From: Klebsormidium nitens
Lineage: Eukaryota > Plantae > Klebsormidiophyceae
Length of the DNA stretch: 45,150 nucleotides
Direction of reading: 5' to 3'
Assembly (NCBI GenBank): GCA_000708835.1
Contig: DF237632.1
Coordinates: 1-45,150 of the forward strand
Position numbers and translations under genes: made by a program
Shown here: piece by piece, positions 1-31,998 of the stretch
How positions within the stretch are numbered: position 1 is the first letter of the stretch
How the letters are laid out: every line of letters begins with the position of its first letter
The notes under the pieces: model-generated
The model's input: the letters and a program-made list of their open reading frames with translations, nothing else
What the model was told of the DNA's origin: nothing
Databases searched by the model: none

Positions 1-468
1 TACTCACCAGAAACAGGGATACGACTTATTCCGAATCTGACCGTTCCAAAACCAGGACGGATGTTGGAGTGCAAACTGTTAGACCTTCTGATTTACACGG
101 AAAGGGATGGCAAAACACACACAACTCTGTATGATAAGAGATCAGATTTCAACTACTTTGTAAATCGATTCCCTGACATTGATTCCAACGTGTCGAGGGC
201 ACAATCGATTTCAACTTTTTACGGAGAACTCGTCCGGCTTTTCCGGACCAATTCACATTTGGAAGGTTTCCTTTCCAACGTCTCAGAAGTTGCATCTTAT
301 CTTGTGGTCCATAAAAGGTACCCACTGGAGGAACTTCGACGTGCCTTCTTTCGTTTCAAAGAAACCCAAAAAGGAAACCCTCGGCTTCTCGGAATGAAAG
401 AAGATTTTGAAACCATTTTTACATTCAAACTGCTTGAATGGATCAAAGCTAGAACAAATGATGTTTAG
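1..468 (+). CDS. C-terminal part (motif E/thumb region) of a Penelope-like element reverse transcriptase, Naiad/Chlamys type; 5' truncated by the window edge
   Basis: Frame 1 is open from base 1 (YSPETGIRL...LLDLLI...TTLYDKRSDFNYFVNRFPDIDSNV...FYGELVRLFR...RYPLEELRRAF). This matches the PLE RT C-terminal pattern FLDL.I...LYDKR.DF.F....FP...SN......Y..QL.R as I recall it. No GIY-YIG domain follows the thumb before TAG at 466-468. Confidence 0.85.
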   Translation, partial: YSPETGIRLIPNLTVPKPGRMLECKLLDLLIYTERDGKTHTTLYDKRSDFNYFVNRFPDIDSNVSRAQSISTFYGELVRLFRTNSHLEGFLSNVSEVASYLVVHKRYPLEELRRAFFRFKETQKGNPRLLGMKEDFETIFTFKLLEWIKARTNDV

Positions 469-2371
469 CTACTCAGCCACTCCTCTTCGCTCTTCCAATT
501 CCAGGATGTTTCCCTATCCCTACGCTTTTAGTGGGGTGCCTCCGCCGTTTGTGGCTCCAGCTCACCAGCAAACCGCACTGGCACCACAGCCGGTTGTTTA
601 CAACATGCTGCCTCCTGTGATGCCACCAACTCCACCCGTGGCACCCCCACCAGTTCAGACTGGTCATCAGGGAGCCTATAATCAGCCGAACTTTCCTGGC
701 CCGCTCCCCGGGCGCTGGGGTCCTGACGTTGACCAACAAAGGGGACCCCCAGGCCCCCCAAACCAGTACTACCAGACCCCAGCCCCCATGGACTTCCGCG
801 AACAGCAACCTTACCCCGAATGGGGAAGGTATGAGACGCATATGGAAGCCCCACAGCGCCAGTATCCTCCGCGACAGTTTGGAGACCACCCCACCAGTGG
901 ACGCGGTGGCCCAAACCGCGGTTTACGCCCTAACCAGCCCGGTTACCGCCCCCCTAACCGAAAACCGTACGACCATCCCGGCCAACCAGCATCACGCAGC
1001 GAACGAAGGCCGCCTGGTCCGGCAACAGTCCTGCGGCAAATCACCATGCCATTCTTCCACAACGCTGACGGCTTGGCGGTGCAACTTTGCGTCAGCACCG
1101 CCAAGGGCCAGCAGTGCCACACCCCATCGTGCGCCCATTCGCACGAGCCAAAGGAGCGCCGCCCCTGTATGCTGTTTCACAGCAAAACCGGAAAGTGCAC
1201 GGACGGGGACCGGTGCCTGCTAGGGCACCGAGAGGCGAAGGACACGTGGCTCGTGTCCAAGGCCGTCAAGCGGACCCGCGCCATCAACACCGAATATGCG
1301 CCGGCCACTGGAGGCGCAGCCGCGACACAGCTCCACGTGGCTCCTACACCACCCGCACCTGTACACGTGGCACCCGCAGCCGCGGTCGCGGCCGCGGGCG
1401 CGGCCGCGCCACCAGCCACTGTACCCGCAGTCGTTCCGCAGCACCCAGGCGAGGCGGCCGCGGCGGCAGTCCCGGCCGTCGATTTCCAAGAGCTAGCCCG
1501 TCGGAACGAGCTGACTGGGGCTAAGGATGAGGTCGCTCGCCTCACGCAGATCACCGAAGAACTCAAGAACGAGTTCAAGACCCAAAGTGCGCAGCTTCTC
1601 ACGCTGCAAGGTCACTTGGGCACGATGGAAGCTGAGAACAAAACCCTCCGAGAGGAGAATGAACGTAAGCGACTCGAAATCGTTGAATACGACTCTTTAC
1701 TTGGTACTTTCACCAGGGATTGCTTCGGGCTCACTAATCTGCTCGATTTGAACGCTACCCCTCCTTCTGAAAGTGCTTTGAAAGGGGCTCTCACCATTCT
1801 GACGGCAATGTTTGCTCGCCCGGTGGAATTCCACGACCAGACGACATCATTGAATCTACTTGAAAATAGACCAGTAACAAGCTTCTCGAATGACGTACAG
1901 ACTTTACAAGCGTTGGGACTGAACCCCGCGATTCTAGAGCATGCCTTCTTCCTTCGTTGTTCCATGACTTACAACGTAGACAAGGACTTTTGCAAAGATG
2001 GCGCTTTTTCTCACTTCTCCGGCACAGTAAGCATTGGACCTGGTGGATCTCAAACCCCCAGATATTCCGTGCTTCAAAAGATGCCAAGGAAGTTTCGTAA
2101 GATCTTCCTCTCACAGAAGAAATCATCGGCCTGCTCAAGTGTAGCTAACTCGTCCTTGAGACAACAGGCTGGTGGCGGATTATGTCAAAGTGGCAGATTG
2201 CCAAAGGAACTGCACGCAGTGCTTGCAACATTTCTATACGGGAATGCATACAAAAACCCAGGCGTACCATTGATATCGCAGTTTGTCACTTTCCTTCAGG
2301 CCGAGCTGAAAGATTTGGACACTATTCTGTTGACTCTTACGTCTCTCCAATCTATAAGGCGTGCCCATTAA
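458..2371 (+). CDS. Intronless 638-aa ORF: Pro/Gln-rich N-terminus, two CCCH zinc fingers, Ala/Pro linker, coiled coil and an unknown C-terminal domain; probable accessory (gag-like) ORF of the retroelement
   Basis: ATG ATG at 458-463 overlaps the end of the RT ORF. C-x8-C-x4-C-x3-H and C-x9-C-x5-C-x3-H lie at 1088-1228. A heptad-rich stretch ELARRNEL...ENERKRLE lies at about 1484-1690. The ORF is uninterrupted, unlike the intron-rich host genes in this window. Confidence 0.75.
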   Translation: MMFSYSATPLRSSNSRMFPYPYAFSGVPPPFVAPAHQQTALAPQPVVYNMLPPVMPPTPPVAPPPVQTGHQGAYNQPNFPGPLPGRWGPDVDQQRGPPGPPNQYYQTPAPMDFREQQPYPEWGRYETHMEAPQRQYPPRQFGDHPTSGRGGPNRGLRPNQPGYRPPNRKPYDHPGQPASRSERRPPGPATVLRQITMPFFHNADGLAVQLCVSTAKGQQCHTPSCAHSHEPKERRPCMLFHSKTGKCTDGDRCLLGHREAKDTWLVSKAVKRTRAINTEYAPATGGAAATQLHVAPTPPAPVHVAPAAAVAAAGAAAPPATVPAVVPQHPGEAAAAAVPAVDFQELARRNELTGAKDEVARLTQITEELKNEFKTQSAQLLTLQGHLGTMEAENKTLREENERKRLEIVEYDSLLGTFTRDCFGLTNLLDLNATPPSESALKGALTILTAMFARPVEFHDQTTSLNLLENRPVTSFSNDVQTLQALGLNPAILEHAFFLRCSMTYNVDKDFCKDGAFSHFSGTVSIGPGGSQTPRYSVLQKMPRKFRKIFLSQKKSSACSSVANSSLRQQAGGGLCQSGRLPKELHAVLATFLYGNAYKNPGVPLISQFVTFLQAELKDLDTILLTLTSLQSIRRAH

Positions 2372-2400
2372 GATTGAAGACCTACAAGAACGGCAAGTCC

Positions 2401-2819
2401 GAAGTTCTGAAAAACACAGAACACCCACTTTTCACAAAGTGGGATTCCCTTACTAATGAAGCGCGTTCACTTCGACGCAGCTTATTCGACCACCAGACTC
2501 ACCTTTCCCTGGAAAGGGTTCTATATGCCAAAAGGCAAGATTTCCAGCAAGGGACACAAGGGACAAATACGCTTTCTTCGCTTTTGTGTATGCGGCTGAT
2601 CTTTTCCTAGGACCTCTTCCTCTTTGGCCAATGGAAACGTCCTTTACTTTTCAGCTGGACAGAAAAGACCCAATGAGGCACTACACCGTGGATAACACAC
2701 GGTGGCTCTCAAAGTCTGATAACATGGCCAGCAAACCTTCAACAGGTGGCAAGCCCTCTAGCGACTTTACAAAGAAGAAAGATGTCATTCGGCTCTTGCA
2801 CAGTTGTGAGCGCTCATAG
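2401..2819 (+). pseudogene. Phage/homing-type HNH endonuclease split across two reading frames
   Basis: Frame 1 gives HPLFTKWDSL (2422). Frame 3 (open 2460-2819) gives FPGKGSIC...FFAFVYAADLFLGPLP...FQLDRKDPMRHYTVDNTRWLSKSDN. The motif order matches H.LY..W...GGRGI.VC...F..F...MG..P...LDRID...Y...N.RW.....N of phage HNH nucleases. Confidence 0.65.
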
Positions 2820-3495
2820 CTTGTGTTCACCGAGATGCTAGGAGTCCTTACAAAAGGTTACGGCTCATCGAACCCTGAGGCGCCTTAACAGTCTGGTCCA
2901 TAAAACGCAAGACATTCTGTATAGATAAGGCGGGTGGAGGAGGGATTTCAGGTTCGACACACGGTTATCAGTATATTTGCACATGCGCAGGCGTCCGGTC
3001 TACCACACCGGAATCTTCCGCGCTCACTCCGTCTGGACGTCCGAGCCGGAACAAAGACGGGAACACATGTGTCCGGACCGACTGACGGTACTGATTGATC
3101 AAAGTTCATCGGACGGCCACGAACTGTTCAATTCAACTCCGAGCTTAGGGTCCAAAAACGTCTGGCTAATTGCACTCAGTTCTGATCGGATTGCATCTGG
3201 ATAAAATTCGTCCAATGGAATCGCTTCCGTCTGCAATATTGTAACGGTGAAGACGTTTAGAATCACTTCGAAGCTTCTTCCTACTCTGTTGGTGACCTTA
3301 AAATCACCTACAAGGAATCGTAGTAGGAAAAAGCGTTACCCCAAGTCCAGATTTACTAGCACTTGGTAAACATCTTGATAGTAGACAGCTATATTATGCC
3401 ATAGAAAGAGAACAACTTCTTTCTCTTTCTCAAGCTGTTTGACAGCAGCCAACGTCTCTGTTTATGGCGCTCAGCACCAAGTGGAGCACACTACA

Positions 3496-3817
3496 ACGGA
3501 CCGAGAGCTGGCTGCACCTACATCGCGTAAATCAAGTTCGAGTCTGTGGAAGTTCTGCATCATCGAACACTGCGGGTACTAACCGTTTCTGACTACATCT
3601 TCGTCACTTTCCTTTCAGGTATAATCCTCATCAACGCAAAGGCTGTCAGAGAACACCAAAGGCTTGCTTGATATAGTGGCTGCTTAGATCAGAATGTAAT
3701 GATGGATTCCTTTGTTTGTTGCATCTAGCTTTGATGGTATACATGTATGCCTCTAGCTGTTTTGTTTTGCTTGCTGTTTGAAATTCGTCAAACAGGTCGC
3801 AGCCAGCTCTCGACCGT
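3496..3817. repeat. Imperfect 24-bp inverted repeat pair, possibly a MITE remnant
   Basis: 3496-3519 ACGGACCGAGAGCTGGCTGCACCT is a near reverse complement of 3794-3817 AGGTCGCAGCCAGCTCTCGACCGT. Confidence 0.4.
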
Positions 3818-5124
3818 TATCACTAGAAGTACTCAGCAGCCCTATTTCAGCTGTAGTAATTAGGAACACGTTTCCATTATGATTAGAAAAAGGGACACCT
3901 CTAGTCGATTGAACACAGAGAGATTTAGCCTCCTATTTGACAGTTCTAGAACCAAAGTAGCCATTGCGAGCTCAACTTTTGGAGCTTTGTTTGCTTTTCA
4001 ACTCACTCATGCACTGAAGGTTATGAGCAAAGATATCTGAGAATGATATTCATGAGCCATACTCGATCTCAATGATAGTGCAATTCGGAATTCGAATCTC
4101 ATGTCACATGCCCAAAAAAGCAGATGCTTAAGAGGTATGGCAGGTTATCTCGACCTTGTCATTCGGGATGAGGTGCTTCAAGCATGATTTGGTCTTGACA
4201 TGCTTGACGTTCCTCAGGCTCTGCCAATCGCAGTGAGACAAGCCGACCGGTTCAAGTCTCCAGCCGAGGGGCCGGGGAACAGTCGGCCTGGGAGCCGACG
4301 AAATCAAAACTCCGTGTCGAACGCTGGACTCACGTAGGCTTTCGTCGAACAATCGTGATTCGTGCAACACAGAAGTAAGTACAGACCGAGTCGCGGAAGT
4401 CGGCGCTCCGGCGCTCCGGCACCCCGCTGCTCCGGCGCGCGCTCCGAGGGTTCCGGTGCGCTCGGCCCGACGGAATGAGTTGGGGCCTGCTGACGTCAGT
4501 GGTCGCCTAGGAAGCTTCACGCGTGTACAAGATCGCATGGCCGGCCAGCTCGGAAAGAAAGCGATCAAGCGCAGCTAGGTACCTAGCACTGGCTAGAACT
4601 TAGTTCAGGGCGGAAAAGCTTCTGCAGGAGCTGTCAGTCTGAAAGAGGACTGCAATGGTGGGCGTCTGTGAGCTACAGATACACCATACGCATTCAACAC
4701 AGCGGAGAGAAGACTCTCCCCGGCAGCTCGCAGCTGAGAGATTGTGCAATGCAATGCAATGTGGCAATCCTGGCAATCTTTGCAATTATCAGCTTGCAGT
4801 TTATGACCTTGATCTGCGCCCCTTGAAATCCAGGGATTTGGTATGGAGTTGGAGTGAAGATTGCTGCTCTATGCAGACAGACGAAAGTTTCATGTACGTT
4901 GGCCATCGGAAGATCTCTGCCTCCGAATGAGAAAGTGGTCTTTCAGCAAGTAGTCGGAAGGAAGCGGGAGCCAAGCGAGAGTCTGGAGCAGAAAGGTGCC
5001 AAGTGCACACAAGAGAAGGAGACACAAGAGGATAAGTATAGACTTCAACTAGAAGCTGCCAAGTACATACAGGAAAAGTGTCACCAAGAGAGTAAAGGAC
5101 GTTGTTGTAGAGAGTGTGGAGAGA

Positions 5125-8100
5125 ATGGGTGTCAAGCTGCACGTGCGCGTGGAGGAGGCACGCAACCTGGCAGCAAAAGATTCAAATGGTCTTAGCGACC
5201 CGTACGTGCGACTGCAGCTCGGGGCGTCTAAGGCAAAGTCCAAGATCATCTACAAGAACCTGAATCCCGTCTGGAACGAGGTAAGAAGCGCAGCGCTGAC
5301 TTTTTTGGTAGACGCACTCCAAGATTTTGGAAAAGTAATGCTTTCTTCTGGGTTCGTTTGTGGATGCGGTTGACCCTCACGACATGTCCTTAAAACCTTC
5401 ATTGAGTACTTCCATCTGGAGGCTGGAATTGAGGACAACTGATGCACTAGCTTCGGTTGATTGATATTTGGGTTAGCTTTTGATGGATACGTTCCTTGGT
5501 ATGATTGTGGCTTGCTGGGCTTGAATCAGCTGATATTGCATTATCTTTCATTCATAGACTTCAAGCACTCATTAATCAGTCAAGCGAAAAGTGGGTGACT
5601 ACCGTAGTTTAACATGAATCCAAGAGTATGAGTTGCGCCCGTATCCAGGGCCGGACACAAGGATTGACATTTTTGGATGTGGGGGCGGTCAGGCATGGCA
5701 TCTCCCCTGCTTCGTCAATCGTCAATCGTTCTCATGCGCACAGAGCTCTTTCTTCGCATGGTTTGGCGGACTTTGTGGATGCGTTTACATCTGAAATTCC
5801 TTTCATCTCATCGTCGATTGCAGAGCAACCTTTCTCGCATTGTCTTCTAGAGGATCTTTCCACCCCGAAATCCTACATCCAACATAGCTGATGCTTCTGT
5901 TGGCAACCTCTTCTCACCAGGAATATTTCTTCAACGTCGAGGACCCCTTGTCGGAGCAGCTACACATAACGGTCTGGGACAGCGACTTTGGACTATCGGA
6001 CGACTTTCTGGGCCAGTTGACACTGCCCCTGTCAGACGTACATGAGGCAGAGAACAGGTCGATCGACACCTGGCATACTCTCGAGCACCGGAAGGCAAAG
6101 GAAGTAGTGTCAGGTGAGGGGGGGCACATGCTGATGTCACAATATTCTTGTGATTTGGAAATGGATTGTTGTGGATACGCCAGAAGTATTGAAGTTGAGA
6201 TTCAAAGCCAGGATGAAGCAAGGCCTTGCGAATGCAGACTCTCACTCAGGACAGAAGATGGATGATGTTGCAGACTTGAAATCCAATGATTTTAAATTTA
6301 GCACGATTGTTAGCGTGATCAGTTAGAAACGGCCTTTCATGTGAATACATTAGGCCAAGCTCAAAGGCAGTCTTGCCACAAACAACCAAAATTATGTAGC
6401 GCGGACTGTCCAAAGAACCAGCATGAGGATGAACAGGGATGTCTCTTCTTGTCGCATGCAAAGACTACTCTTAGCGAACTTTCAAAAGCTTTACTCCTGC
6501 TCTTCATACGTTCTTCAGGGCTTCCTAAGGCTCCAGGTGATCAGGCTCCCTAGAAGAACGACTCTGGCCACCTCCCTTGACCACTACACTCCCTAACTAT
6601 TCGGCCTGACGGCATTATTCTGTGACACAATTACTAGCTTATGCGCGTGTGCATCCGGAATTGCAGGCGAGATCCGGCTGACCCTCTCCCTGATCGGCAA
6701 GTTCGAACGTTCCACCAGCGATTCCAGCGCAAAGGGAGGCTCCTCTTCTTTCTCTCGCCGGCCCTCCATCTCCCCCTCCTCCAACCAAATGTCCCACTCC
6801 CAAACCTTTTCGGGGGCTACCGACCATGCCACGCCCCTGCTGAGCCCCACCCCCCCAAAACGGGGCCTCTTTTCGCGGCGCTTCTCGAGGGCGGAAAGCA
6901 GCAGGAGCGGCCATCTGAATCGGACAGAATCCACGAGTTCGACGGGAAGCTCGGTGCTAGAGTTCGACGGGGAGTTGGCGCCTGAGTCGTTCTGGGAGGA
7001 CGACGGGAAGGCGTTCGAGACGCCTGTGGAGATGCCCCCGCCTCTGGCGGGGGGGGTGGTAGCGGACCGGGTCTATAAGGTGAGAAATGCAACCGTTCTT
7101 TCTGGTCTCATTAACGATCTAGATGCTCAATTCGAGCATTTTATGCCTGAGGCGGTTTGGACCGTAGACAGCTTAAGCGGCAGAATGTCCCTTTCTCGTT
7201 GACGGACTGTAAATAAGCTATTGAAAGGACCCTAAGGTAGCCAAGCGTGGCAGCTCAACGCCAAACACCCTGTGTGACTCAGCGCACGGTTGCGTCCCTT
7301 CAAAGCAAACCGCTTTTATCTTCCATTGCCTCCTGACGCCCCTTATTGGCTGAGGGATTAACGTTCAGAAATCAGGATGTCAGGTGTATGTCAGCGCCAG
7401 TTAGCGCTTTGTCTTTAGCTCAATTTGTTATAGCAAAGGACTTGGAATCGTTGTTTTAGGGCAAAGGTCGTCATGTCGGTGTTGTGTCGGTTACAGAAGT
7501 CCACTCTTGACCACCCATGGGGTCCCTCAGAAGCTCTCCCCTCGTCGCTCCATGGGAAGCATGCTGCAGCACGTGAACTGCTATCAAAGTTTTCTTGACA
7601 CCTTTGGGGCAGAGCTCTAGAGTCCATTCAACCACCCGGCCGTGTGACGACCGGAAAACCGCACCACCCAATATAGAAGAGCTGTCCGCCAAGCCAGCAC
7701 TTGAGGCCACTTTACTGTGGCAAACCCCTGACCAATGTAGGCTTGCGTGCATACTAAGAGTAAGTAGCATTACGGCACATGACTTCGATCCCTTTGGTCT
7801 TACAGACAGTTTTACCCAAATATCTCAGCACTTTTGTGGTTCGAATGATCTTCTTTTCACGAATCTAAGTTGATCAATGATTGCAGGTTAGTTGCAAGGA
7901 CATGCACGGCATCCTCTTCGCAAACGGGTCTGAGTTTCAGACGAAGCTGTTTCGCGCGTGCAATTGGACCCGGGGCAGCACCGAGCCGTGGCATGAAGGC
8001 GAAGGGGGATACACCCGGCGCGTAACTTACCTCACCGCGCCCAGCAGCCTTATCAAGGGTGTCAAGGCCACTGAGATACAGGTGAGGTGCTGGAGATTTG

Positions 8101-11100
8101 ACACTGGTTCGGAGCGAAGATTGGGATTGCCGCTTTGGTTGATCAGCTCGAAGTGTCAAAGCAGGGATAGAGTCAAAGATGATTTGATTCGAACAGGCTC
8201 GTCGAGTTGGAGATTTTATCGGCTGAATTGCGAAGTGGGCGCTTGGGAGACCCTGGTTGCGAGGAGTCTGTTCTGGGCAAGTTGAGAAGATTGAGCAAAT
8301 GAGTTGCGCGTTGCGCGTGCACCTTTGGAAAAAAAGGTGATCCAACGTATCACGAAGAAGTCCTGTGTCAAAGGCACAATGCCCTTGCGCAGCTTGGAAA
8401 AGTCTTCACTTAAGAAGTTGAGCCTCTGCTTCTTTGGTATCCTTTGCAAACTGAGAAACGTTTGCTGTTTCTTCTAAAAGTGGGCAGAGGGAGGCAAAGA
8501 ATGAGCAAACCTGGTAACTTCAAAGCTCTGAGATTATACCTTTTCCCGTCAATTCTTATCAAGCTCAAGATGATTCATTCTTGCAGGAGTATTCCAACTC
8601 TGGGCATGGCGGGTACGTCGTCGACATTACGAAGTCGACTCCGGACGCTCCGTACGGCGGCACGTTCCGGACACGTGTCCAGGTGTGCGTGTTTCCCGGG
8701 CTGGAGGACCCTCACCAGACAGCATGTGTTCGCATCTCGTACGAGCCGGAATTTCTGCAGACGACGTCGCTGCGGGGCGTCATCGAGAAGGGCATGGCGC
8801 AGGGCATGAAGGAGACGTATCAGCTGTTCTTAGATGTAAGTCCTTTAAATGCGCTTGAGCGTTCTGAAACGGCTTCTCGTGTCCTGTCTTATCAGACTGT
8901 GTTTGCGACTTCATCGTTCGCTTTGCAAGGCGTGCAATTCGGCCGTTATTGCTAGTTGGGTTGCGCCGTTTCTAGAAGGTGTTTGATTGAGAAGGCATGT
9001 CGGATAGGGTGTTCCTACACTCGGTTTCAAAGTAATGTCAAAAAGCACTTTGTCTACGACGTAGTGCGTTCATCTCCGCATGTTTTTTGAGTTACCTTGT
9101 GCTGTTGTCAAGCCCATCTCGTATCTTCACTTTAACCCCAACCCAAACCCCTCCCCCCCCCCCCCCCACCAACAGACCCTGGACTTCTTCGCCCCTCCGG
9201 TCACCCCGCCCAACGCGCTCCAAAAGGCGGTCCACTCCAGTCGCTTCCAGCAATTCCAGGAGCGCTTCTACGTCTTTGCCGCCGCCGCTTCGGGCTTTTT
9301 CCTGTTCCTTTTCTGCATCCATATCGCTCTAGTGGGCCGGAACCGCACGCCACGCGGGTTAGAGCCTTACCTGCTCGGGTTAGATCTACCCGACTCGGTT
9401 AGGGAGCTGGTGCTGACGTGGCTCGTGGTGGCGCTCGCGCACATCGTGCTGGTCAAGGTGGAGGTCCAGGCGCGCGCGCGCCTCCTCAAATGTGAGCGTC
9501 TCAAGCAAGCTCTTGACCTTCTGATTTGCGTTCATTTCTGCAGATTATTAGGTACTGAAGGTACGAGTAATTGGCTCATGGGTGCGCAATTGGCTGAAAG
9601 TTTACAAGCGAAAACCTTGCCGCCCGCCCGATGTGAATCAACGGAATTTATTAGTGTAACGGATGAGCGGGAAGAAGACTGGGTGGAATGCCGTGCCTGT
9701 TGACGAGTTCGCTCCTGAACTTCCAAGAAGGCAAAACCGATAAGAAACGCTGGCGGGCAATCGCCATTGTTCCTTCAGTTTCGGTTCCACCTCTGACCCT
9801 GTGAGACCCGCTTTTACCGCTCACCTTTCCCCGGAGACTCGGAGCTTTCAGATACCATCAACTGCAGCCCACCTCTAAGACGGATCAATAACACGAATTT
9901 CGAAGTCAACAAATGCACGCTTGAAAGGGCCTTTCTTACGTGCGTCTCTATTCCTGCCCGCAGTCGGCGACCACGGGATCCGCGCGCAAGGGGAGGGCTG
10001 GCTGCTCACGGTCGCCCTCATCGAGGGCGTCAACCTGCCCAAGGCTGACGTCACGGGCTTCAGCGATCCGTACGTGGTGTTCACGTGCAACGGCATGAGC
10101 CGGACCAGCTCGGTTAAGCTGCAGACGCTTAACCCGGAATGGAACGGTGGGTTACACTTTCTTCTCTGCATTCTCACTGATCTTTCAAGTCACATTCCTC
10201 GGTTGTCTGAATCGCTTAGTCACGCCCAGTTCTTGGTGATACGTTGGAAGGCGCCGATTATACGTATCAAAGGTCGTCAAGCATGCAGACACCCCAATGA
10301 GGGTGGCGATGGGATTTTTGGTTTCCTAGTAGCTATATGGGCACGTGGTTTTGCAGAACTCGTGGCTGCAACGAGACTCGCTGACAGGAATGGGGTGCCA
10401 TACATCCAATGGGGACTTAAGGTCAGAACTTAGTAATCAGTCTAGCATTAGGTCAGCGCAGCATCAGGCCTATGGAATGGCCCTTGAAACGGTGAAGTCA
10501 GAACCGCAGCAATGTGGCAGATGTGACAGCGCCAACAGTGAGCGGCCGCAAGGCAGCATGGCGTGAACTGACGTGGGCTTGCTGACGTCACAGACATCCT
10601 GGAGTTCGACGCCACAGAGGACCCCCCGACGCTGATGACCCTGGAGGTGTTCGACTACGACGGGCCGTTCTCGGAGGCGGAGCTGCTGGGCCGGGCAGAG
10701 GTAAGGGAACGGAACGGAACGGAACGACCGGAACGAACGGAACGAAGAATGGAGTTGACACATAGACCCAAGAGATGATGTAACGGAGTCTGCAAGAGAA
10801 AAAGAGCGAGAAGTTGACCCAAAGAACAAATAACGCTTGCACTTTTCCAGGCCAAGCTTCGGAGACTGTGCGCTCGACATCCCTGCTCCGTTCCCATACC
10901 CCTTCCCCTCAACATCCAAATCAACGAACCCGACTCAGTTTGCGCATCCTATTGTAACGTTAGCTTACCATTATCTTTCTTGTGATCGATCTGAATTTGC
11001 ACAAATACCTCGGTCTTCTAGGTTAACTTCCTCAAGCGCAGCGGCGGCGAGCTGGCAGACCTGTGGCCCTTTTTCGTCGACAAAGCCAAATACTTCGACA

Positions 11101-14100
11101 AAGATCGATCCGCCCCCCTGAAATCCCCAAAACGCCTTTTAATTTGAAGTAACCATATCTGGCATCATTACGTCTTCCAGGTCAACTTCCTGAAGCGCAG
11201 CGGTGGTGAGCTGGCAGACCTGTGGACCTCTTTTGTCGACAAAGCCAAATACTTCGACAATAGCCGGTTCCTCCCCTCCTGAATCCTTTTGAAACCCCTT
11301 CTACTTTGAAGTAAGCCTGTCTAGCATCACACGTCTTTCAGGTCAACTTCTTGAAGCGCAGCGGGGGTGAGCTGGCGAACCTCTTTTGTCGACAAAGCCG
11401 AATACTTCGACAAAAGCCGATTTCCCCCCTCCCGAAATTTCTAAAACCTCTTACTCTAAGTAACCATGTCTGGCATCATTTTGTCTTCCAGGTCAACTTT
11501 TTGAAGCGCAGCGGCGGTGAGCTGGCAGACCTGTGGATCGACCTGGAGGGGCGGCGCGCCAAGGCGGCGAACAGCCGGCTGCACATGCGGGTCGTGCTCA
11601 CCAACACGGTCAACGACTCCGGGGACTCCGAGTCTTACGTTAGCTCCAAGCTGCTTGAGAAAGTCAAGTCGGAGACGGGACGCGCGGTAAGTCTTCCGCT
11701 GCAATTTGAAATTCTGCACTTTAGCATTTGTCGGTCTTTGGTTTTCCCTGAGATTTGGCTTTGTATCTGGAGTGCCGATATGTCGGGCTTTTTAGATAGA
11801 ACGTTGTATAGATGTCGAAGGTTTGGGGCTGGGTTACTATGGTCGAGTTGCTGCTTTGGGCACTTAACGACGTGGAAACAAGGGTTCGGAGGGGTTCAGG
11901 TCCTTCCCATACCTGACCCTCCAAGTCGGGCTTTCAAGCTGGGGCGAACTGCTCTGTCAAAAGCCCTTTCACGGCTTTCAAAACAGTACTTGACCACGAT
12001 CACCTGCTTTAAGGAGACCAGATTGCACACCCATGGTTCCCTGTTGCTGAAACATTCTTCTATGTTGTGCAGCTGACGCACAGCGACAGTAAGCGAAACG
12101 AGGCCTTCCAGCGGCTCTTCCATCTGCCCGAGCACGAGACGCTGATCAACGACTACGTATGCGCCGTCAAGAAGAAATTCAATCTGCAGGTGTGTGGTCT
12201 GATCAGAATCTGTCGCTTCATAAGCTTTGAATACGGCTCGTAGTTTATATTGCACCCAAACCAGGGTAAACGTACCCGGTTTCGAAGCGTGGGAAAGCTT
12301 TGAAACGTGCGGACAGGACTGACAGAAAGTTGATGTGGATAGTTGGGACGGTCCGAAAGAGACAAAGTCAGTCCAGCAATGTGAGAGGGAAGCAACCTCA
12401 AATTACAGTGCATTGCACGGAGTGTCAGGCTGTGCAAGGAAGTGACGTCGTTGCAAAGGCTGTCCTCAGAAAAAAGTTTCATGCATTCCTAATTTGTTTC
12501 TGCACAGGCAAGGTGCAATGACCAAGCCCTCCGCTGTTCTCTGTGTTCCCTTCCCCCATACGGCCACATGATTTTATCCCTCCGTTGTTGACTCACTTGT
12601 CTCTTTTTCCTCTCCTCCCCCCCCCAGGGCCGCGTGTTTCTGTCCCCCCGCCAGCTCGCCTTCTACAGCAACATCTTCGGCCACAAGACGCAGTTCAGCA
12701 TCGCGTGGGAGGACATCGACGAGATCCGCGAGAACAGCACCTCGGTTAGCAAGTTCACCCGGCTGCTTAACCCGTACGTAACCCTGTACGCGCGCAAGGG
12801 GCGCGCCCTGGACGCAAAAGCGGGGTCGTACGGCGTCGACAACAAGGGGCGGCTCAAGTTCCGCTTCCAGTCGTTCGTCAAGCCGGGGCCGGCCCTGCGG
12901 TGAGAGAGGAAGTTAGGTTCGTGTTTGTGGTGTTTGTTCGTGATTCGTTTTTACAAGTTAGTAGCGTCAGCACTAGAACTCGGGAAACGTAAGTAAGGGA
13001 ATTGAAGGGGTCCACAGCCCTCTTTTTGGCGATAATGGGTGCGTCCAGTTCCGCTTCCAATTCTTCGTCAAGCCGGGGCCGCCCCTGAGGTGAGGGGTGT
13101 GGCATTCTTGGGTCAGGGATGCGAGATACACGGGGGGAAATGTGTTGACTTTTTTTTGAGCAATGGGCTATGCAACTCCGGCACCAGTCCGTTGTCACGG
13201 CGGGGTCAGTCATGAGCTTTAGGTATGACTTTTAGGGCATGCTGTCCACATTTTCGGAAATCTTTGCGACAGGGCCTTCGGGTGTCAGGTGCTCCCCACT
13301 TTCGGCATCGTCTGCTCTCGTCGTTTCCGAGTGGATACCTCGTGGAATTTGCACATCTTACCCCCAATACAGGAATTGATCCGGCGCGAATTCTGCAACA
13401 ACCCGGAATGCTGAAGACCTCCGAAACAAGTTCCTTTGCTTGTTTCCCAAACTGTCTTTTCTTTCCTTTCCAGGACGATCCAGGTGTTGTGGAAGAACCG
13501 CGCGTGCTCGCCCGAGCAGTGCGCGGCGAAAGTCGCGGAGGCGACCAAGCACCTGACGACCAGCTCGGACGACACCGTCTCGACGGACGGGTCCGAAGAC
13601 GGGCCGTTCCTGGCGCTCGAAGAGCCCGAGATGACGGTGAGCTGACGTACCCTCAATTCGTATACGTTCTACAATCCTTGAAAACGTGAATACCTACCCC
13701 TCTTTTGGAAGCTTCGTGCCGTCTGGGGTCGCGAATACGGGAACATCTTGGCTGGCACTTCCGCTTGCAATCCGCCGTGAGCTGGGCAGAGAGTTTGGCG
13801 GTTGTCTGGCCGGCCCTTCGGCTTGGAGAACGGAGCTGCGAGTATGGCGACTTTTTGGCCGGCGCTTGTGCTTGAGTTTTGCCGGAAATGCGGACAGGGC
13901 GACTCTTTGACTGGTGCCATCTGCTGAAAGTTCGCCGCAATCCGCAGTTGCTGGGCAGTCGGTGGCACTGGAATGCGGACAGTGGGAACTGTGGTGTGTT
14001 GTTCGGGAGCCGCATACCGAAGGTTTAAGGGAAGAAAGTCCGGTCTGACAATCGACCCCATCGCTGCTGCGCGCAGCGGGGTGCCCAAGAGTGACGTTTC

Positions 14101-16020
14101 GATTGGGAAGGCCGCACTCAAGGAAGCATTCTTTAGATTTGCCGTGCTCAAACTGAGTACGTTTCGCAGACAAGTATGAACAAGCAGAGTCTCCCTTTTC
14201 TGCCGTCCGCAGCTGGCGTCCGAAATTGACGTGCCAATCCGAAGTGTCGCGCTGCGCCGCATGTTAAGGAAGACAAGTGTGGAAACTGGGAAGCCGCACA
14301 CAAAAGCCATGAGAGCAGCTAAACCTTAGCGGAAGTTGACTCGGACGGTCTGACAATATTTCTTTCGTCCGCAGCTGGCGTCCGAGATCGACGTGCCGAT
14401 TGGGAAGGCCGCGCTGTGCCGCATGTTCGAAGAGGACCAGCTGGACGAGCGCGTCGCGACCGCGCGCGGCCTCGTCTACTACGAACACACGCCCTGGGAG
14501 CAGCTGGACGACCGCACGCCGCCCACGTTCCGGCGAGAGGTGGGCGCATTTACAATGTATTTTCTAGTTCGCATCCATACCGTATCGTGTAAAGCTGACA
14601 GATTTCAGTTCTCGAAAGTCAAAAGTTAGAGACTTTGGCTGGTCATTTATGACTATACACCCCTGAAAAATGAATTTGAGGAGCGAACGCCGACGTTCCG
14701 GCACACTTACACCGTACTCTTTCAAACATACTTTGATTCCTCGGAACAGAGTAGGTAACTGAGGTTTTCGCTCGTCAACTGCGAACACTGGCCATGGGAT
14801 GGCATTGAAGACCTTGAAGGCTCACCGTCCGACTTCCGATGTTCGCTACTTTTATCCTTGCGCAAACTCTGCTAGGTACGTTCGTCCTCCTCTCCTTCTC
14901 CCCGTCGCTTTCGCGCTTTACCTTCACGTCTCCTTTTCTGAAACTTACTCGCTCGAGATACGCCGTGCGTTTGCGTTCTTTGATCGCCGAGTCCGCGAGT
15001 TTGTCAAGCGACTGGCAAGCGGGAGAAGTCGCTTCTCTACAATAGCAACAAAATCAGTACGTCTTTTGCCACATTAGATCACCAGTTATGTGAAAGCAGA
15101 CCAGGTTAGGCTAGCGGTGACGCGTCAATGTCGCGATCTGGTTTATGACATACGGAAACATTTCCAAGAACGTAGGAGTCTAAATGTACGAGTCTCTGAT
15201 CTGTTACGGCTCTCCGCTTCTGCCAGGTGTCGTACTCGTACCCTCGCCGAGTGTGCCCGTTCGGCAGCCGCGTGACGTCACTGTGCCAGCTCACCAAAGT
15301 GAGCGACGAGCACACGATCATCGAGGAGATCTCGACGCTGCACGACGTGCCGTTCGGGAACCTGTTCCAGGTGCAGACGAAGAGAGTCGTGACAGGCATT
15401 GGGCCCAGCAAGACGCACATTCAGGCGCTCGTGGGTAAGGCGCCGCTCCTAGTTGCACGTCTGCCGGTGCCCTGACGTTTGTGGTTGACGACTTGCGTCA
15501 CTTGACCTTTTCCAATTCCTTTACGCCTTGTGGGTTTCGGGTCTGCTGAAATTCTCAAAAGACGACTTCAGATTCGGGGAAACGGCATTGGAAAGGACAG
15601 TTGGAAGCGTCGCACTCTGATATCAGCCAAAGCGAGCATCCTATGCGCTTTCTTCGCCTTTCGATTTGCCGTCGGTTCTGTTGCTCCCCGCGTTCGAAAC
15701 GTTGCTGGTGACACGTCGGAGCGAAACTACATCTCTGCGCAACCAGCAGCGAACGTGTATGTACGTACTTTTGGTCTGCTCTTAAACATTGATATGCTTT
15801 TCTCGTTTTTTCTGTGGTCCTGAACCCTGTATGAATCAGGCGACTCGTCATTTCTGCAGGCGTGAGCTTCCACCGCAAGACCCGCTTCCAGAGCCGTATC
15901 CGCTCTAGCGTGCTGCAGCACAACGTGCGGGACCTCACCGAGACCGCCAATATTATCGTCACCGAAGTCATTAAGTCGGTGCAGTGCGGCGAGGGCCCGA
16001 TTGTCACTGGGCGAAAATAA
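5125..16020 (+). CDS. C2 and GRAM domain-containing protein (C2-VASt-TM-C2-GRAM-VASt; At1g03370-like lipid transfer/membrane contact protein), 15 exons
   Basis: GT-AG exons with compatible phases where checked: 5125-5280, 5921-6113, 6667-7079, 7887-8081, 8587-8835, 9176-9491, 9964-10146, 10594-10700, 11492-11686, 12073-12189, 12628-12899, 13474-13636, 14375-14539, 15227-15434, 15860-16020 (TAA). Motifs: EARNLAAKDSNGLSDPYV and NLNPVWNE (C2); DAPYGGTF (VASt); GLDLPDS near the TM segment; GDHGIRAQGEGWLLTVALIEG (second C2); GRVFLSPRQLAFYSNIFGHKT (GRAM); LHDVPFGNLFQV (VASt). Confidence 0.93.
10706..10745 (+). repeat. (GGAAC)n microsatellite immediately after the exon 8 donor
   Basis: GGAAC GGAAC GGAAC GGAAC GACC GGAAC GAAC GGAAC GA. 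Confidence 0.85.
11010..11540 (+). repeat. Tandem repeat of the exon 9 acceptor plus exon start: three intronic copies and the real junction
   Basis: The motif TCTTYYAG|GTYAACTTYYTSAAGCGCAGCGG.GG.GAGCTGGC begins (exon side) at 11022, 11181, 11342 and 11492. Unit lengths are 159, 161 and 150 bp. Confidence 0.92.
12846..13095 (+). repeat. Intronic duplicate of the exon 11 3' end plus donor site
   Basis: AGTTCCGCTTCCAGTCGTTCGTCAAGCCGGGGCCGGCCCTGCG|GTGAG is repeated 180 bp downstream as AGTTCCGCTTCCAATTCTTCGTCAAGCCGGGGCCGCCCCTGAG|GTGAG. Confidence 0.88.
14041..14430 (+). repeat. Two degenerate intronic copies of the exon 13 acceptor plus exon start
   Basis: GTCCGCAG|CTGGCGTCCGA..T.GACGTGCC at 14213 versus the real junction at 14375. 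CGGTCTGACAAT...GCGCAG|...GATTGGGAAGGCCGC appears at 14041-14115. Confidence 0.75.
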
Positions 16021-20386: not shown

Positions 20387-23300
20387 ATGGCGTCTGGCAG
20401 AGGCATCAGGGATTGGCTCCCTCTGATTCGTCGCCGATCAAGAAGTGCCCTCCAGAAGCGCAAAAGGGGCAGCTCTGATGCGCCAGTACACACGTCGGCG
20501 TTGGCGCTCGCACTTCTGCTCCTTATGTCGGGCATCCAATCGCCTCAAGTGGTCCTTGGCCAGACGTGTGGCGTCTTCTCGTGCAGCGGTCCAGGACTGA
20601 CCTGCTGCGAGGGGGTCTTCTGCTTCAATTCTGCAAACGGTGGCTTCTGCTGCGGCAGAACTGCCTGCGTTTCCGGAAGTATATGCTGTAGCGATCCAGC
20701 CACCGGTGACCATCATTGCTGCCGGGGGGATTACCAGTGCTGTGCGGGGGGCTGCTGCACCAATTACGAGACGACCGGTGACGTCTGTCACGTGGATGCC
20801 AATGGTTTCGGTACATGCCGAACCGTCTGCTCCACATTCCCTGTGGTCACAACCTTCTGCAGCCTGGGGCCTGAATCCAACCCCGCGCAAAACTGCTGCG
20901 GTCCCCACCAAAAGTGCTGCAAGGGGTCGGGCCACTGCTGCGACTCCGATTGCGCTGGTGAGAATAATGTGTTTGCAGTTTTCAAATCCTGTTACAAGAC
21001 CTTCTCCACCACTGGTGAACCTCGGATTTGCTAGTGCAGCCTGAAATGCTTGCCACCCTGGCAAGGGCTTTGAAGCACGATTCGTTCGTTTGTGGGCGGC
21101 TGCTATTGAGCACTCCCTGTGAAATTCAGATGTTGAACGGACCAGTAGGTATGGTTGTGTTTCATATTTACTACATGTTGAGCAGAAAAGAAACTGAATT
21201 AGGTGCTGCCTTGACAATTGCCCCTTCAGATGAATGTCCTTTCAGGCTTGTACGTTCATTTTATGGACTCGCGCTCCCCTTCCTTTGCTTGCAGATAGGA
21301 ATGGCATCTTAATCTGTCCTGGTGAGCATACTAGCTCAAAGTGATGCAATGTGCAGCTGCAATTTGTTCAGGCATCTGATCTGCAACTTGAACGAGGTTT
21401 GAGCTCCTCATATTGCTCCTCTGGACTTGATTTCTTACTAAGACAAGCCAGTAACGTCAGCCTTATCTGAGCGTTGTGACTCAATTCTGCTCGACATGTT
21501 TCTTGATCATTCTGGTCCTTCCTTGATCATTTGACGATCTCCGATTCAAGCTTTTGCAGACAGTGTCTACGGAGATCCTCACATCTCGCTGTCTAGCTTG
21601 ATTGACCTTGAGAAGCATCCCGACGTTGAGGACTTCTCTTTTGACTTCCATGGTGAAGCCAACAAGACTTACTGCATGATATCCGACCATCTTTTTGCTG
21701 TAAGACTGCCTTCTCTGTAGGACTCCTACGTCAAAAGGGGTGTTTACTGTTTTGAATAGGCTTCGAAACCATGAAACTTAGGTTCTGTAGAAGAAGACAA
21801 GGACAGAACTAAGGCAGGTCCACTTTGCAATGCTGTTGATGGAATGGGCGATGTACGCGAGGATTGACTTGCTCCATGGCCCACTTCAATATCCAAACTT
21901 GGCTGGTCGTTGGCTGGTCAACAGGAAAAAGCTGATCCACTTGGCCTATCAACAGCTCAGCTTTGAGTTGAAGGAGTTGCAATAAGCTCACCCTGTCTCA
22001 CTGAGGGCTGCCACTACTACAGCTGGACACGTGATCTGAAATTAGCTTATTCTGACGTGTCAGTGCAGGGACGTACATGGAATTGCTGCCCTCTCAGTGT
22101 GTCCAACTATAATCTTGCTGAGAGAACCTCTTGATCTAGCTGAGCTCCTTTCGTCTTACTTTCCAGGTTACCGTTCGCATGTTTGGCCTCTCAGCGGACG
22201 TTGAGATACTTGAGCGTCCAGTAGAGGACCCCACAAGGTTCTTTGAGGGCACCTGGATTGACGGAATTGGGTTCATGTACATCAACTGGAGTGGAGAAGA
22301 AAGGAGGGTCGAAGTCCTCCTGAACCACGATTCGGACAGCTTTGGAGACGCCGAGCCTTTCTCTGCCAGTCTGGATGGCTTCCGCATCCCCATCAGTATC
22401 GTAAGTTGCTGATAGTGGTAGTATCCCCAAGCAAGTGGCAGACTGACGTCAGCTCGTGCACTTTTGGTTTAATGCCTACGAGCTTTGAGGAGATTGATTA
22501 GTACGAAAGGCTGGTGCCCAGTTCAATTTGCTCAGTCGATCTGCCACGTGGTCCTTTCAAGGAAGTTCCTGTCAGACCTTCCAGCGGCTAGGAGGACAAG
22601 CGAGTATCAGACAGTTGTGAAGCCCGGTGTTTAAAGTGCTCCCCTGAGGACATAATCCTTCCACTGAAAGACACATCTTTCTTCTCCTCAAAAAGTGCAC
22701 ACTTCTGTGGACTTTTGTGTGGCATTCAAGTCTCGTTCGTGTCTTTGCAGCATGACGGACCTGAGTTTCTTTGGACCAGCCCCGACGGCATGGTCAAGAT
22801 CAGCCCCCATTGTACTCGAGGAAGTGCTCTTTCAATCTCTGTCGGCGAATCACTGGACATGGATATCTTCCGGGAGTTTGAAGACGAGATCATCACTGAG
22901 CCACCCGTGCAGTTCCTGAACTTCGAGATCCGTCATGCTGCAACCACTGATTTTGTGCACGGGGTAAGCACGCTGTTAGGGGATAACTACTTTTTTGACT
23001 CCTCGCAAACAGGTCATGTGGAAGCTTCGGAACGAATGCGTCAGAGCGAATAGTAGGGCAGAACGCCAAGGCAGGTTGAGGAAGGCATCATGGAACACTT
23101 CAGTTATTGGTCTCTTTGAGGTTTGTACCTGTCTACAACTTGCTCGTGGCAACCTCGGAGTACTGTGATTAGCCAATGATGGGGCCCTTTCCGGGCTCTA
23201 AAAGACGGCTTTCTACGTTTGTTTCCGATCCACAAAGAATCCTGGTAAAGGACAAAGTAGAGGCCGTGCTCGAACGTGTCTTGCCATTTAGCAACCCGCA

Positions 23301-24621
23301 CTACGCCAAGGTGTCACGTTTCGAAGTCTCACAGAATCAGAAAGGCGGCTTACAACCAGACTTGGGCCGCTCGAGGTTCATAAATCCTGGAAGCGCCTGC
23401 TTTTAGCTGTCTTTGCCGCGGGCATCTAATAAGGTTTTTGCTGAGTCTACTCGGCTCAAGTAGGTTTCAATGGTAAAATAGTTTTTTCTGTGCGACTCAG
23501 CTCAAGCAGGACGGGTGGGGCCGGGTTGAAATGGGATGGTGAGCAAACGAAGAGTTGCGAGTAAACTCGTAAGTTCAGTTGACATCATGCGGATCAATCG
23601 GGAACTTTTCTTTAGGTTTATCCAGTTCGTTTGGCCCTCCGGTATCATTGCATTGAGAAGGTATTTTGCTGCGCAGTTTTTGGGTCAGATGTACGCTCCT
23701 GGAGCGGTTGAGGAGCGGCTGGCTATGGGCACCCTCGAGGGGTTTCTCCACCGCGAGTACGTCGAAGGTGCGGACGAAGACTACGAGACGTCCAGCCTCA
23801 CCTCGTCGGACTGCGCCTTCGACCGCTTTGGAAAGGTAATATTCCCGTCTCCTCCCAGTCGCCTTAGACTCACAAAATCTAAGTATGCTTCTCTCATTCT
23901 CGAGCTGCTTCGATGGACCTCACTATATCTGTAGCCAATGATGTTTGACCACAGGGGTTCCCTACTGGCAGGCCGACTGATGGAATGCAGATTGCATAGG
24001 GCGAGCGATGTCAAACGTCAGCTTAAGTACTGTTTCGATAGAAGGGGCGCCTGTAAGCAGAGACTTTTAGCGGCCCGCGTGTAACTGGCAGGCTGCTCTA
24101 ATCTGTCCCGGGTCTTGCGCGCTCAGCACGAACCAATCACCTTCGACGTCTTTTCGCATTACATTTAACGTGCACGAAGGAGAATGGCACGATCAACTTC
24201 AATCTTTATGTTCCCACAACTTGTTAGCCAGTGCCCCGCCAGGTAAATCCAGATTTGCATAGGCGCAAGCCGAGCATAAAAACAGGGGGACTGCTCCAGA
24301 GCGCCCCCGACTTCTATTTTTTTTTAGGGCCTCATGATCCGTGTCTTCATGTGTCCCAAAACGTAAGATTTCTGCGGCTGATTCGCGACCAATGCTGTAT
24401 ATTTCGAGAATTTGGAGATACGCACCGCTAGCGGCCCTGGCTACGTCCGGTAATTGAAGCACCAAAGTCAATTGATCGACGTTCACCTGCAGGACCTGTC
24501 AAAAGCTTCCGGCTTCTCCGCCGTCAACTTCGGAAGGCGTCTCCTGACGCCATCTGTCTCGGACCGTTTGCCAGTGAACTGCAAGGTCCTGGACAAAGGG
24601 CGGAAATTCACGTGCGCCTGA
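20387..24621 (+). CDS. Secreted Cys-rich protein with a GDPH-containing root-cap (vWD-like) domain, paralog 1, 7 exons
   Basis: Exons 20387-20957, 21295-21321, 21560-21699, 22167-22400, 22751-22963, 23677-23835, 24493-24621 (TGA). Hydrophobic signal ALALALLLLMSG; many CC doublets; YGDPH...FDFHG....YCMISD; FLGQMY...DYETSSLTSSDCAFDRF; terminal C..LDKG..F.C. Confidence 0.85.
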
Positions 24622-25355
24622 GTCACTCAGTCCCGATACTCAGTGCACAGGGCTTCAGGCACCAGATCCGCCACGGCCCATCTGTTTGACGCAATTGGCC
24701 GTTCTGTCCATACTGTTATCATATCTGTACCTGTGGGCACCACTGTGACAGCAAGATATCTTCTATTGGTGGTAGTAAGGTTGAACGGAAACCACTAAGG
24801 ATAAATGACTATTTTATATAGTCGGCTTGCTTATACGTAAGTTGTGAGATCTCTCTGTCACTTGTACAATATGGGGTGGACAGTCCCCGGACAGTCGCAG
24901 TGGGACCGTCGAACACTCCGCTCAACGTCCTTTAAGGACCTGGTTTAAAGATTCCGTGAGAGTTCTACCCAGTGAAGTTGAACGAGAACTTACTGATCGA
25001 TATCAAATCTACAGCCGCTAAAAGCATACTCGTCGGACACCGCTCGTTTGTATTGACTGGCTTGACCGCTTACTGACCCATAATTATACGGACAGCTGAG
25101 ACGAAGAACACGCAGGAAGGTTTTGCTTTGATCCGAGTCACTAGGAAATATTGTACCTGGTTGTGGTCCAATCGAGCGCCTTCAAAACTGGGCCATGATT
25201 TCAAAATCATTGGTCAGTAGTAGTGATGGCTTTCGAGGCCGCGAGAAAGCGTGACTTTGACATGACTCCGAATCGCTTGAACCATGTTCAGCCTCCAAAA
25301 CGGTCTGCGACTCCCTCTCACACCCTCGGACTCAATCATCTCGTATAGAAGTGAG

Positions 25356-31200: not shown

Positions 31201-31998
31201 GAGCTTTACGGGACTGTTTCGGTGTCTTCTCAACATTCAACACAAACGATTAATTAATTAATCGAGCGGAAAGAGTTTGTATTGGCAGGCCAAGTGGTCA
31301 AATGAAAGTTGCCTAAAGGGGACTCATAATGGAACGTCCGCTTCGTGCTCCAGTAGAACGGGCGCCTAGTGAACAGAAAACTTTGAGGGGTGCACACGAC
31401 CGGCAGGCGGCCACCTTTGCGCGCCTTGCCGCTGTCAACGAGAGCCCACCTTCGGGATCTCTTTCAATCAAGTACTGAGGAGAGAACAGAGTCTGGCACA
31501 TCGTTTTCCGTTAACGTTGTGTACGGGATACACAGCTTGTCGACTGCTCTGTAGAGAACCCATGTCTGCATGGCAAGCCAAGCTTGATTGTCATGGAGCG
31601 ACTGATAAAGCGCGGCCTCCTGCTTTTCTGTCGCCGGAACGAGTGTCTTGCTGACGTCTTTCTTAGCCGGACTTGCTGCTTAAAAGAAAACGCTGCACGC
31701 TTCGACCTCCCTGTTGAGACGCCGTCTTTAAGCGGATCAAATGCTCAATCAACCGGACGCTAATTGAAAATGCTCCCAAGTACAGTAAGACAATGGAACC
31801 GGACGAAATCAGAGGCACAACTGGCTGGTTTTAGAACGCACGGAGCAATCTGGCGTACCTTCCCTCCAGGTCCCGCCGACAGCTTCCGACTTCTCCGCCG
31901 TCAATCTCGGAAGGCGTCTCCTGATGCCAGCTGTTTCGGACCGTGTGCCAGTGAGCTGCAGGGTCTTGGACAAGGGGAAAACATTCGTGTGCGCTTGA
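28250..31998 (+). CDS. Secreted Cys-rich GDPH/root-cap-domain protein, paralog 2, 7 exons
   Basis: Exons 28250-28592, 28899-28925, 29079-29218, 29570-29806, 30154-30363, 31008-31166, 31870-31998 (TGA). Intron positions match paralog 1, and the peptides are near-identical in places (FFEGTWIDGIGFMYINWSGEERRVEVLLNHD; GQMYAPGAVEERLAMGTLEGFLHREYVEG). Confidence 0.85.

Follow-up and report, generated by a model that had tools for sequence, protein, structure and literature searches.

The whole 45,150-bp scaffold of the alga Klebsormidium nitens that bears the gene model KFL_006830010 was analysed (hereafter, the window), and its first stretch, from position 1 to ~2960 on the plus strand, is probably a dead copy of a retrotransposon with two open reading frames (ORFs), the 5' end of which is cut by the scaffold edge. 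The family to which this copy belongs joins a reverse transcriptase (RT, encoded by ORF1) that is Penelope-like and that lacks the GIY-YIG endonuclease to a second protein (encoded by ORF2), in which CCCH zinc fingers and a coiled-coil-like region are followed by an HNH-like domain at the C-terminus. Penelope-like elements (PLEs) are the closest retroelement relatives of telomerase and, to our knowledge, have been thought either to carry GIY-YIG or to be confined to chromosome ends. We propose tentatively, and with less than even confidence, that the C-terminus of ORF2 is an active nickase without the HNH-motif His (Tyr-dependent, PacI-style) that replaces GIY-YIG in an old CxC-type PLE clade; this clade would span Klebsormidium-type algae and two metagenomic lineages. 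The interest is in the family rather than in this truncated, broken locus.

The coding sequence of the retroelement was located at 1-2888 (+) and is intron-free and co-oriented. The features of the window copy are as follows:

1-468, plus strand: the C-terminal 155 codons of ORF1 (RT), startless, comprising the end of the palm after motif C and the thumb (frame 1; TAG stop at 466-468).
458-2371, plus strand: the portion of ORF2 that is still open (frame 2), with a Pro-rich N-terminal region, CCCH fingers, a coiled-coil-like stretch and a conserved middle domain.
1088-1228, plus strand: two CCCH zinc fingers, C-x8-C-x4-C-x3-H at 1088-1144 and C-x9-C-x5-C-x3-H at 1166-1228.
1481-1690, plus strand: a coiled-coil-like, heptad-rich stretch, assigned by composition (weak ADIP and YabA matches only, E 0.06-0.4).
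2334-2888, plus strand: the broken C-terminal HNH-like domain of ORF2, read in frame 1 (2344-2451), frame 2 (2459-2548) and frame 3 (2559-2885).
2893-2965, plus strand: the 3' untranslated tail, with a conserved stem around the G-rich motif GGCGGGTGGAGGAGGG (2929-2944), then ...GACACAC (five copies compared).

A family census of 11 loci was obtained by exact protein look-up. The RT was found directly 5' of ORF2 in six independent loci (the window, L003/L004, L005/L006, L007, L008 and L009), with a spacing of 8-64 nt in the relatives and an overlap in the window, where an ORF2 ATG at 458 lies ahead of the ORF1 stop (ATGATGTTTAG). The same layout was observed in L010 and L011, the RTs of which are much more distant (~32-38% identity in the thumb). 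L010 (PJEL010019420.1, 611-4918), a contig from the marine metagenome PJEL associated with the foraminifer Globobulimina, carries a 694-aa RT, a gap of 12 nt and a 736-aa ORF2, the latter matching P0005 (E 6e-19); this ORF2 has the middle domain as well as Cys/His fingers and a heptad stretch, and its C-terminal motif reads ...CIDRID..MHY..GNCRWLS..NNAAN. In L011 (1-5507, from a JGI metagenome), the RT is P0101 and the C-terminus of the ORF2 protein reads ...VDRYNNCLHYTIDNVRW...N..NK; a 136-bp overlap between the two ends of this contig is consistent with a 5.37-kb unit assembled in tandem or as a circle. An arrangement of two tandem RT ORFs in L011 was considered and rejected, as the first 'gene' proved to be ORF2 by tblastn. 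A pattern search of metagenome contigs for related loci gave 87 matches, none of which was confirmed. Altogether, this gene order, repeated in six loci and three deep lineages, indicates that ORF2 with its HNH-like domain is part of the same element as the RT.

ORF2 in the window starts at 458 or at 506, the latter being the position of the Met conserved in the relatives (MFPYPYAF), and the translation of frame 2 is free of stops from 407 to 2371. The Pro-rich region accounts for the N-terminal third of the protein; a word search with the whole of ORF2 was swamped by this region (2 matches), and the C-terminal part of P0002 was used as the query instead. The ORF2 relatives number 22, and the middle domain is conserved among them. 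Both fingers of the window copy conform to the CCCH spacing C-x7-9-C-x4-5-C-x3-H and gave a Pfam match to zf-CCCH_9 (E 4e-5, under the gathering score), and the fingers of the L007 ORF2 gave zf-CCCH_12/9 matches, also under the gathering score. The fingers are kept in L002, L003, L007 and L009 and take a variant form in L010 and L011. Judging from its composition, the stretch at 1481-1690 is likely to be coiled-coil-like.

The HNH-like part was found to be the C-terminus of ORF2. In the Logan contig L008, which shares 79% nucleotide identity with positions 130-2777 of the window, ORF2 and the HNH-like part form a single frame of 789 codons running to the contig end, and L001 (70% identity) and L007 likewise read both in one frame. 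The original prediction, made from the letters of the window, had described three co-oriented, intronless coding units belonging to one element: an RT, an ORF with tandem CCCH fingers and a coiled coil, and a separate HNH ORF. The shared orientation, the intron-free coding sequence, the two fingers, the heptad-rich stretch and the placing of ORF2 and the HNH-like domain in the same element as the RT were all borne out. The number of units was not, as the relatives read two ORFs and the supposed third (2586-2819, containing QLDRKDPMRHYTVDNTRWLSKSDNMASKP) is the C-terminus of ORF2, frameshifted in the window.

The assignment of the C-terminal domain as HNH-like comes from profile comparisons. 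PHROG families phrog_2081, phrog_3377 and phrog_374 (HNH endonuclease) and phrog_8790 (restriction endonuclease) were matched by 21 of the 22 ORF2 relatives, with best E-values of 4e-10, 3e-8 and 6e-6 (phrog_8790 at 6e-6), and the window fragment by itself gave a PHROG HNH match at E 1e-3. The core motif, QLDRxDxxRHYTxDNxRWxxxxDNxAxKP, lies at 2649-2738 (+), and all three lineages share its elements D-R, H-Y, N-x-R-W and N-x-x-N. From the reading of this motif, every member, and likewise L010 and L011, has Arg (LDR) where the canonical general-base His would stand. The invariant H-Y, D and N are present, as they would be in a PacI-type site. PacI has an HNH site without the His and still cuts, by means of a loop Tyr and with the metal held by Asp and Asn (PMC5714182; PMC4081073); in other His-less His-Me fingers, catalysis has been lost and DNA binding kept (PMC5714182). 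A tblastn search of phage genomes with the domain gave matches at E 0.1 only, and a feature search of the ESM Atlas returned homing-endonuclease-like clusters at 0.77-0.83, beneath the level of evidence. PDB matches to PorK and discoidin were regarded as chance.

Selection on ORF2 was compared between its domains as pN/pS (the ratio of non-synonymous to synonymous differences per site), which is given instead of dN/dS because synonymous sites were saturated (pS 0.78-0.87). The HNH-like domain had values of 0.09-0.23, against 0.25-0.41 for the middle domain. By these values, constraint within ORF2 is strongest on the HNH-like domain, and the family has needed this domain.

The 155-aa RT fragment of the window matched 740 proteins at E<=1e-3 in an exhaustive HMMER search, the long ones carrying RVT_1, and shared 51-64% amino-acid identity with the RT ends of L003, L005, L007 and L009. 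The 5' part of the RT is missing from the window copy because the scaffold starts inside the element, and the features of the full protein were obtained from relatives, in which the intact ORF is 688-703 aa long. The closest full-length relative is P0031 (688 aa, 53% identity), encoded on L007 directly 5' of the ORF2 homologue, a position that P0176 (703 aa) also occupies on L009. Residues 22-667 of P0031 (~645 aa) aligned with residues 360-983 of P0149 (E 8e-37), a 999-aa protein with an N-terminal GIY-YIG domain followed by the RT; P0193 also has an N-terminal GIY-YIG. This alignment spans the CxC motif (CHCQ vs CCCE), H-x-x-TG-x, GPxF and DK, as well as the long insert that separates motifs A and B, with the thumb as the extreme C-terminus. 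The CHCQ of L007, L009 and P0174-P0177 aligned with the CCC/CTC of P0149 and P0193 (the window copy lacks this region), and alignments of the relatives showed an IFD-like insert of ~95 aa between RT motifs A and B and the presence of DKS/DKC. Altogether, ORF1 encodes a Penelope-like RT of the Naiad/Chlamys type, in agreement with the class originally predicted.

The ORF1 of the family begins ~20 aa before the point aligned to P0149 residue 360. GIY-YIG was not found by Pfam in the intact ORF1s P0031, P0174 and P0176, nor among the called genes upstream in L009, and neither Pfam nor NCBIfam gave a GIY-YIG match in the family. The HNH-like domain is thus the sole nuclease-like module of the family, because the intact ORF1s of the relatives have no GIY-YIG; the same observation contradicts the view in the original prediction that HNH was a 'second' nuclease. 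No hammerhead ribozyme was found in the window and five loci (Rfam, at the gathering score and at E<=1-5), telomere-type repeats were absent from the window and from every locus, and the loci of the family that were seen are interstitial.

Directly 3' of the ORF2 stop, a stem was found in the window and in L001:2320-2375, L002:7450-7515, L003:10020-10095 and L009:12745-12830. RNAalifold predicted 14 pairs in this stem, 6 of them with compensatory changes, from five sequences only. The G-rich motif GGCGGGTGGWGGNGGG is nearly invariant among copies with coding DNA that is 65-70% identical; the exact pattern occurs once in the window and also in L001, L003 and L009, and L002 has it with one mismatch (by eye). 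The stem and G-rich motif had no Rfam match. Similarity among the copies stops ~10-20 nt past the motif, the endings observed resemble (CA)n, (C)n or (CT)n, the window beyond 2900 gave no match to other loci, and no second copy of the element was found in the window. On these comparisons, the 3' end of the element is probably near 2955-2965, and the stem with its G-rich motif may be a candidate 3' recognition signal for the RT, or a G-quadruplex.

In the mechanism that we propose, one bicistronic RNA would give rise to the RT and the ORF2 protein, and the latter would bind the element RNA via its CCCH fingers and multimerise via the coiled coil. The HNH-like domain, standing in for the missing GIY-YIG, would engage chromosomal DNA, and its nicking would give the 3'-OH for target-primed reverse transcription, with the stem and G-rich motif past the ORF2 stop as the candidate 3' recognition site for the RT. 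For the single step in which the HNH-like domain nicks target DNA, our confidence is close to, and still short of, an even chance.

The strongest alternative keeps the same architecture and takes the HNH-like domain to be a catalytically dead module for DNA binding or targeting, with integration occurring at pre-existing breaks, at replication intermediates or by means of a host nuclease, as has been suggested for other retroelements that lack an endonuclease. We consider this explanation possible, if rather doubtful. It accounts for the Arg found in place of the HNH-motif His in every member of all three lineages, has a precedent in the His-Me fingers that lost catalysis and bind DNA (PMC5714182), and is in line with the lack of a Pfam HNH match and of fold evidence. 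However, the Asp, the Asn and the invariant loop His-Tyr have been retained, as in a PacI-type site, the strongest constraint in ORF2 falls on this very domain, and the loci are interstitial and without telomeric repeats.

A number of observations count against the overall reading of a two-ORF Penelope-like element whose ORF2 protein nicks its target. The HNH-like domain had no HNH match in Pfam, nor in NCBIfam, and neither the C-terminal domain nor its core had a sequence match in PDB, PacI included. AlphaFold2 gave predicted local distance difference test (pLDDT) values of 51 (181 aa) and 55 (71-aa core), with the core at <50, from 20-22 close sequences. The domain may be unable to cut, as its catalytic His is replaced by Arg. 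A maximum-likelihood tree of 15 RTs speaks for the reading, as the endonuclease-less (EN-less) lineages formed one clade (100/100), apart from the rows that include GIY-YIG-bearing proteins; however, this tree is unrooted and was built without named references (Chlamys, Naiad, PLE-X, Athena, Coprina, TERT), and it shows grouping only, not a position among published clades. The lack of a hammerhead in the family fits Naiad/Chlamys and not the EN-less PLE-X. L002 is the one exception to the close RT-ORF2 spacing among the loci with sufficient upstream sequence: the 4.7 kb preceding its intact 914-aa ORF2 with the HNH-like domain (L002:4699-7443) contain no RT, and this locus may represent a 5'-truncated copy ending near the start of ORF2, or a solo or independently kept ORF2. 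Finally, no target-site duplications, pseudo-long terminal repeats or exact ends could be defined, and the window copy is cut.

As to the decay of the window copy, comparison with L008 revealed insertions of 2 nt at ~2334, 4 nt at ~2448 and 7 nt at ~2548, the last being a tandem duplication of CAAGGGA. These insertions shift the reading through frames 2, 1, 2 and 3, which matches the three-frame translation. Additionally, a premature TAG is present at 2817-2819, where L001 has a Gln codon, and the predicted ancestral stop of ORF2 is the TAA at 2886-2888. Alternatively, errors of assembly could account for the frameshifts and the stop, and ORF2 of the window would then really be intact; in favour of this, the scaffold is a draft and contains two N gaps. 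However, the lesions involve several bases each (2, 4 and 7 nt), the 7-nt one being clearly a tandem duplication, and are accompanied by a separate nonsense codon; this explanation was considered improbable because multi-base insertions and a nonsense codon are atypical of sequencing errors.

The decay also bears on the public annotation. The best protein match of ORF2 was P0001 (KFL_006830010), 99% identical, 410 aa long and deposited as a 'C3H1-type domain-containing protein'. The KFL_006830010 model (506-2819) bridges the lesions by linking the undamaged N-terminal portion of ORF2 with the final 23 residues of the HNH-like tail, and seems to be an artefact of annotating a transposon remnant. 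It would be better annotated as such a remnant than as a cellular C3H1 zinc-finger gene.

Two further explanations fared worse. An RT of another class, such as a LINE-like or group II-like enzyme, could be suggested by the weak Pfam RVT_1 matches, the absence of a PDB sequence match for ORF1 and the missing hammerhead ribozyme, but is very unlikely given the end-to-end alignment with proteins combining GIY-YIG, CxC and RT, a layout defined only for Naiad/Chlamys PLEs. The least likely explanation, already largely refuted, makes ORF2 and the HNH part a host gene or another mobile element beside a truncated PLE, as the NCBI annotation of a cellular gene (KFL_006830010) and the RT-less ORF2 of L002 might imply; against it stand the constant order of RT and ORF2 at 8-64 nt or in overlap across loci and lineages, the stitching of out-of-frame pieces in the KFL model, and 5' truncation, also seen within the RT of L005, which explains L002 equally well.

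In the rest of the window, which contains two N gaps and, further along, host genes with introns, the stretch at 2965-5100 had no long ORF and no similarity to other loci. Exons of a C2-domain host gene (…DPYVRLQLG…NLNPVWNE…) occupy 5116-6265, starting ~2 kb downstream of the element. Short direct repeats with a spacing of 150-190 bp were observed within a spliced gene at 11013-11571, 12844-13094 and 14197-14427. Two blocks at 20430-24635 and 28290-32012, ~7.4-7.9 kb apart, share 78-90% identity over several segments; both contain a Cys-rich coding segment, and they look like a diverged tandem gene duplication. Outside the window, a Harbinger-type DDE_Tnp_4 transposase gene was found at L009:4623-5843 (minus strand), ~2 kb upstream of the PLE copy in that locus.

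Amongst known systems, the family is most readily compared with the Naiad/Chlamys PLEs, the diagnostic features of which include GIY-YIG, CxC, an IFD-like insert and DK, and most of which lack a hammerhead (Craig et al. 2021, PMC8557442). As in those elements (PMC8557442), the RT is homologous end to end, with CxC, GPxF/Y-like and DK motifs, an IFD-like insert and a C-terminal thumb, a canonical hammerhead is absent, and the host is a green-lineage alga. Unlike them, the family lacks the N-terminal GIY-YIG and possesses a second ORF, in which CCCH fingers and a coiled-coil-like region are combined with an HNH-like domain. The terms HNH, CCCH, ORF2 and Klebsormidium have 0 occurrences in the text of Craig et al. 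2021 (PMC8557442), and a literature search for PLE together with HNH found nothing relevant. The two-ORF layout is thus undescribed in that paper or in the other literature searched, and the suggestion in the original prediction of an undescribed architecture agrees with this result.

The PLE-X elements of Chara braunii and Selaginella (PMC8557442) resemble the family in having CxC, in lacking GIY-YIG and in their streptophyte hosts. Compared by description, they differ in having canonical hammerheads, of which none was found in the family, and in an N-terminal extension with CxCX1-8C behind an intron, which was not seen in the ORF1s of L007 and L009; additionally, the family has ORF2, and none has been reported for PLE-X. 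An RT ORF without an endonuclease is also found in Athena/Coprina and Terminons. In contrast to the interstitial family without such repeats, these elements are telomeric, with reverse-complement telomeric repeats and hammerheads, and have no CxC. Athena/Terminons carry accessory coiled-coil ORFs.

The two-ORF layout is also reminiscent of long interspersed nuclear elements (LINEs), which combine an RNA-binding coiled-coil protein with an RT, a bicistronic RNA (here a proposal) and frequent 5' truncation. The family differs from LINEs in that the order of the ORFs is reversed, the nuclease-like domain is on the putative RNA-binding protein and not on the RT, and the RT is of another class.

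As for the HNH-like domain, it resembles the phage HNH families (PHROGs 2081, 3377, 374 and 8790) in profile, with E-values down to 4e-10, and in the pattern D-(R)-x-D ... Y ... N-x-R-W ... N, and it resembles the PacI group of His-Me fingers in the absent general-base His and the loop Tyr. Unlike phage HNH proteins and PacI, it is eukaryotic and fused to a retroelement ORF2, and it has no sequence match to solved structures. A specific relationship to PacI was not confirmed by these comparisons. How CxC PLEs without GIY-YIG insert genome-wide or into ribosomal DNA remains to be seen (Craig et al. 2021, PMC8557442), and a constrained HNH-like domain on a second protein would be a specific candidate for the means by which such 'cutter-less' elements insert. 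If the domain is active, retroelement classes can exchange their DNA-cutting module, and a phage-type His-Me finger would have found a new eukaryotic use. A nickase that stands in for GIY-YIG would, in turn, represent an endonuclease swap within the PLE class and provide an answer for the intrachromosomal insertion of EN-less CxC PLEs, possibly including the PLE-X elements of Chara and Selaginella.

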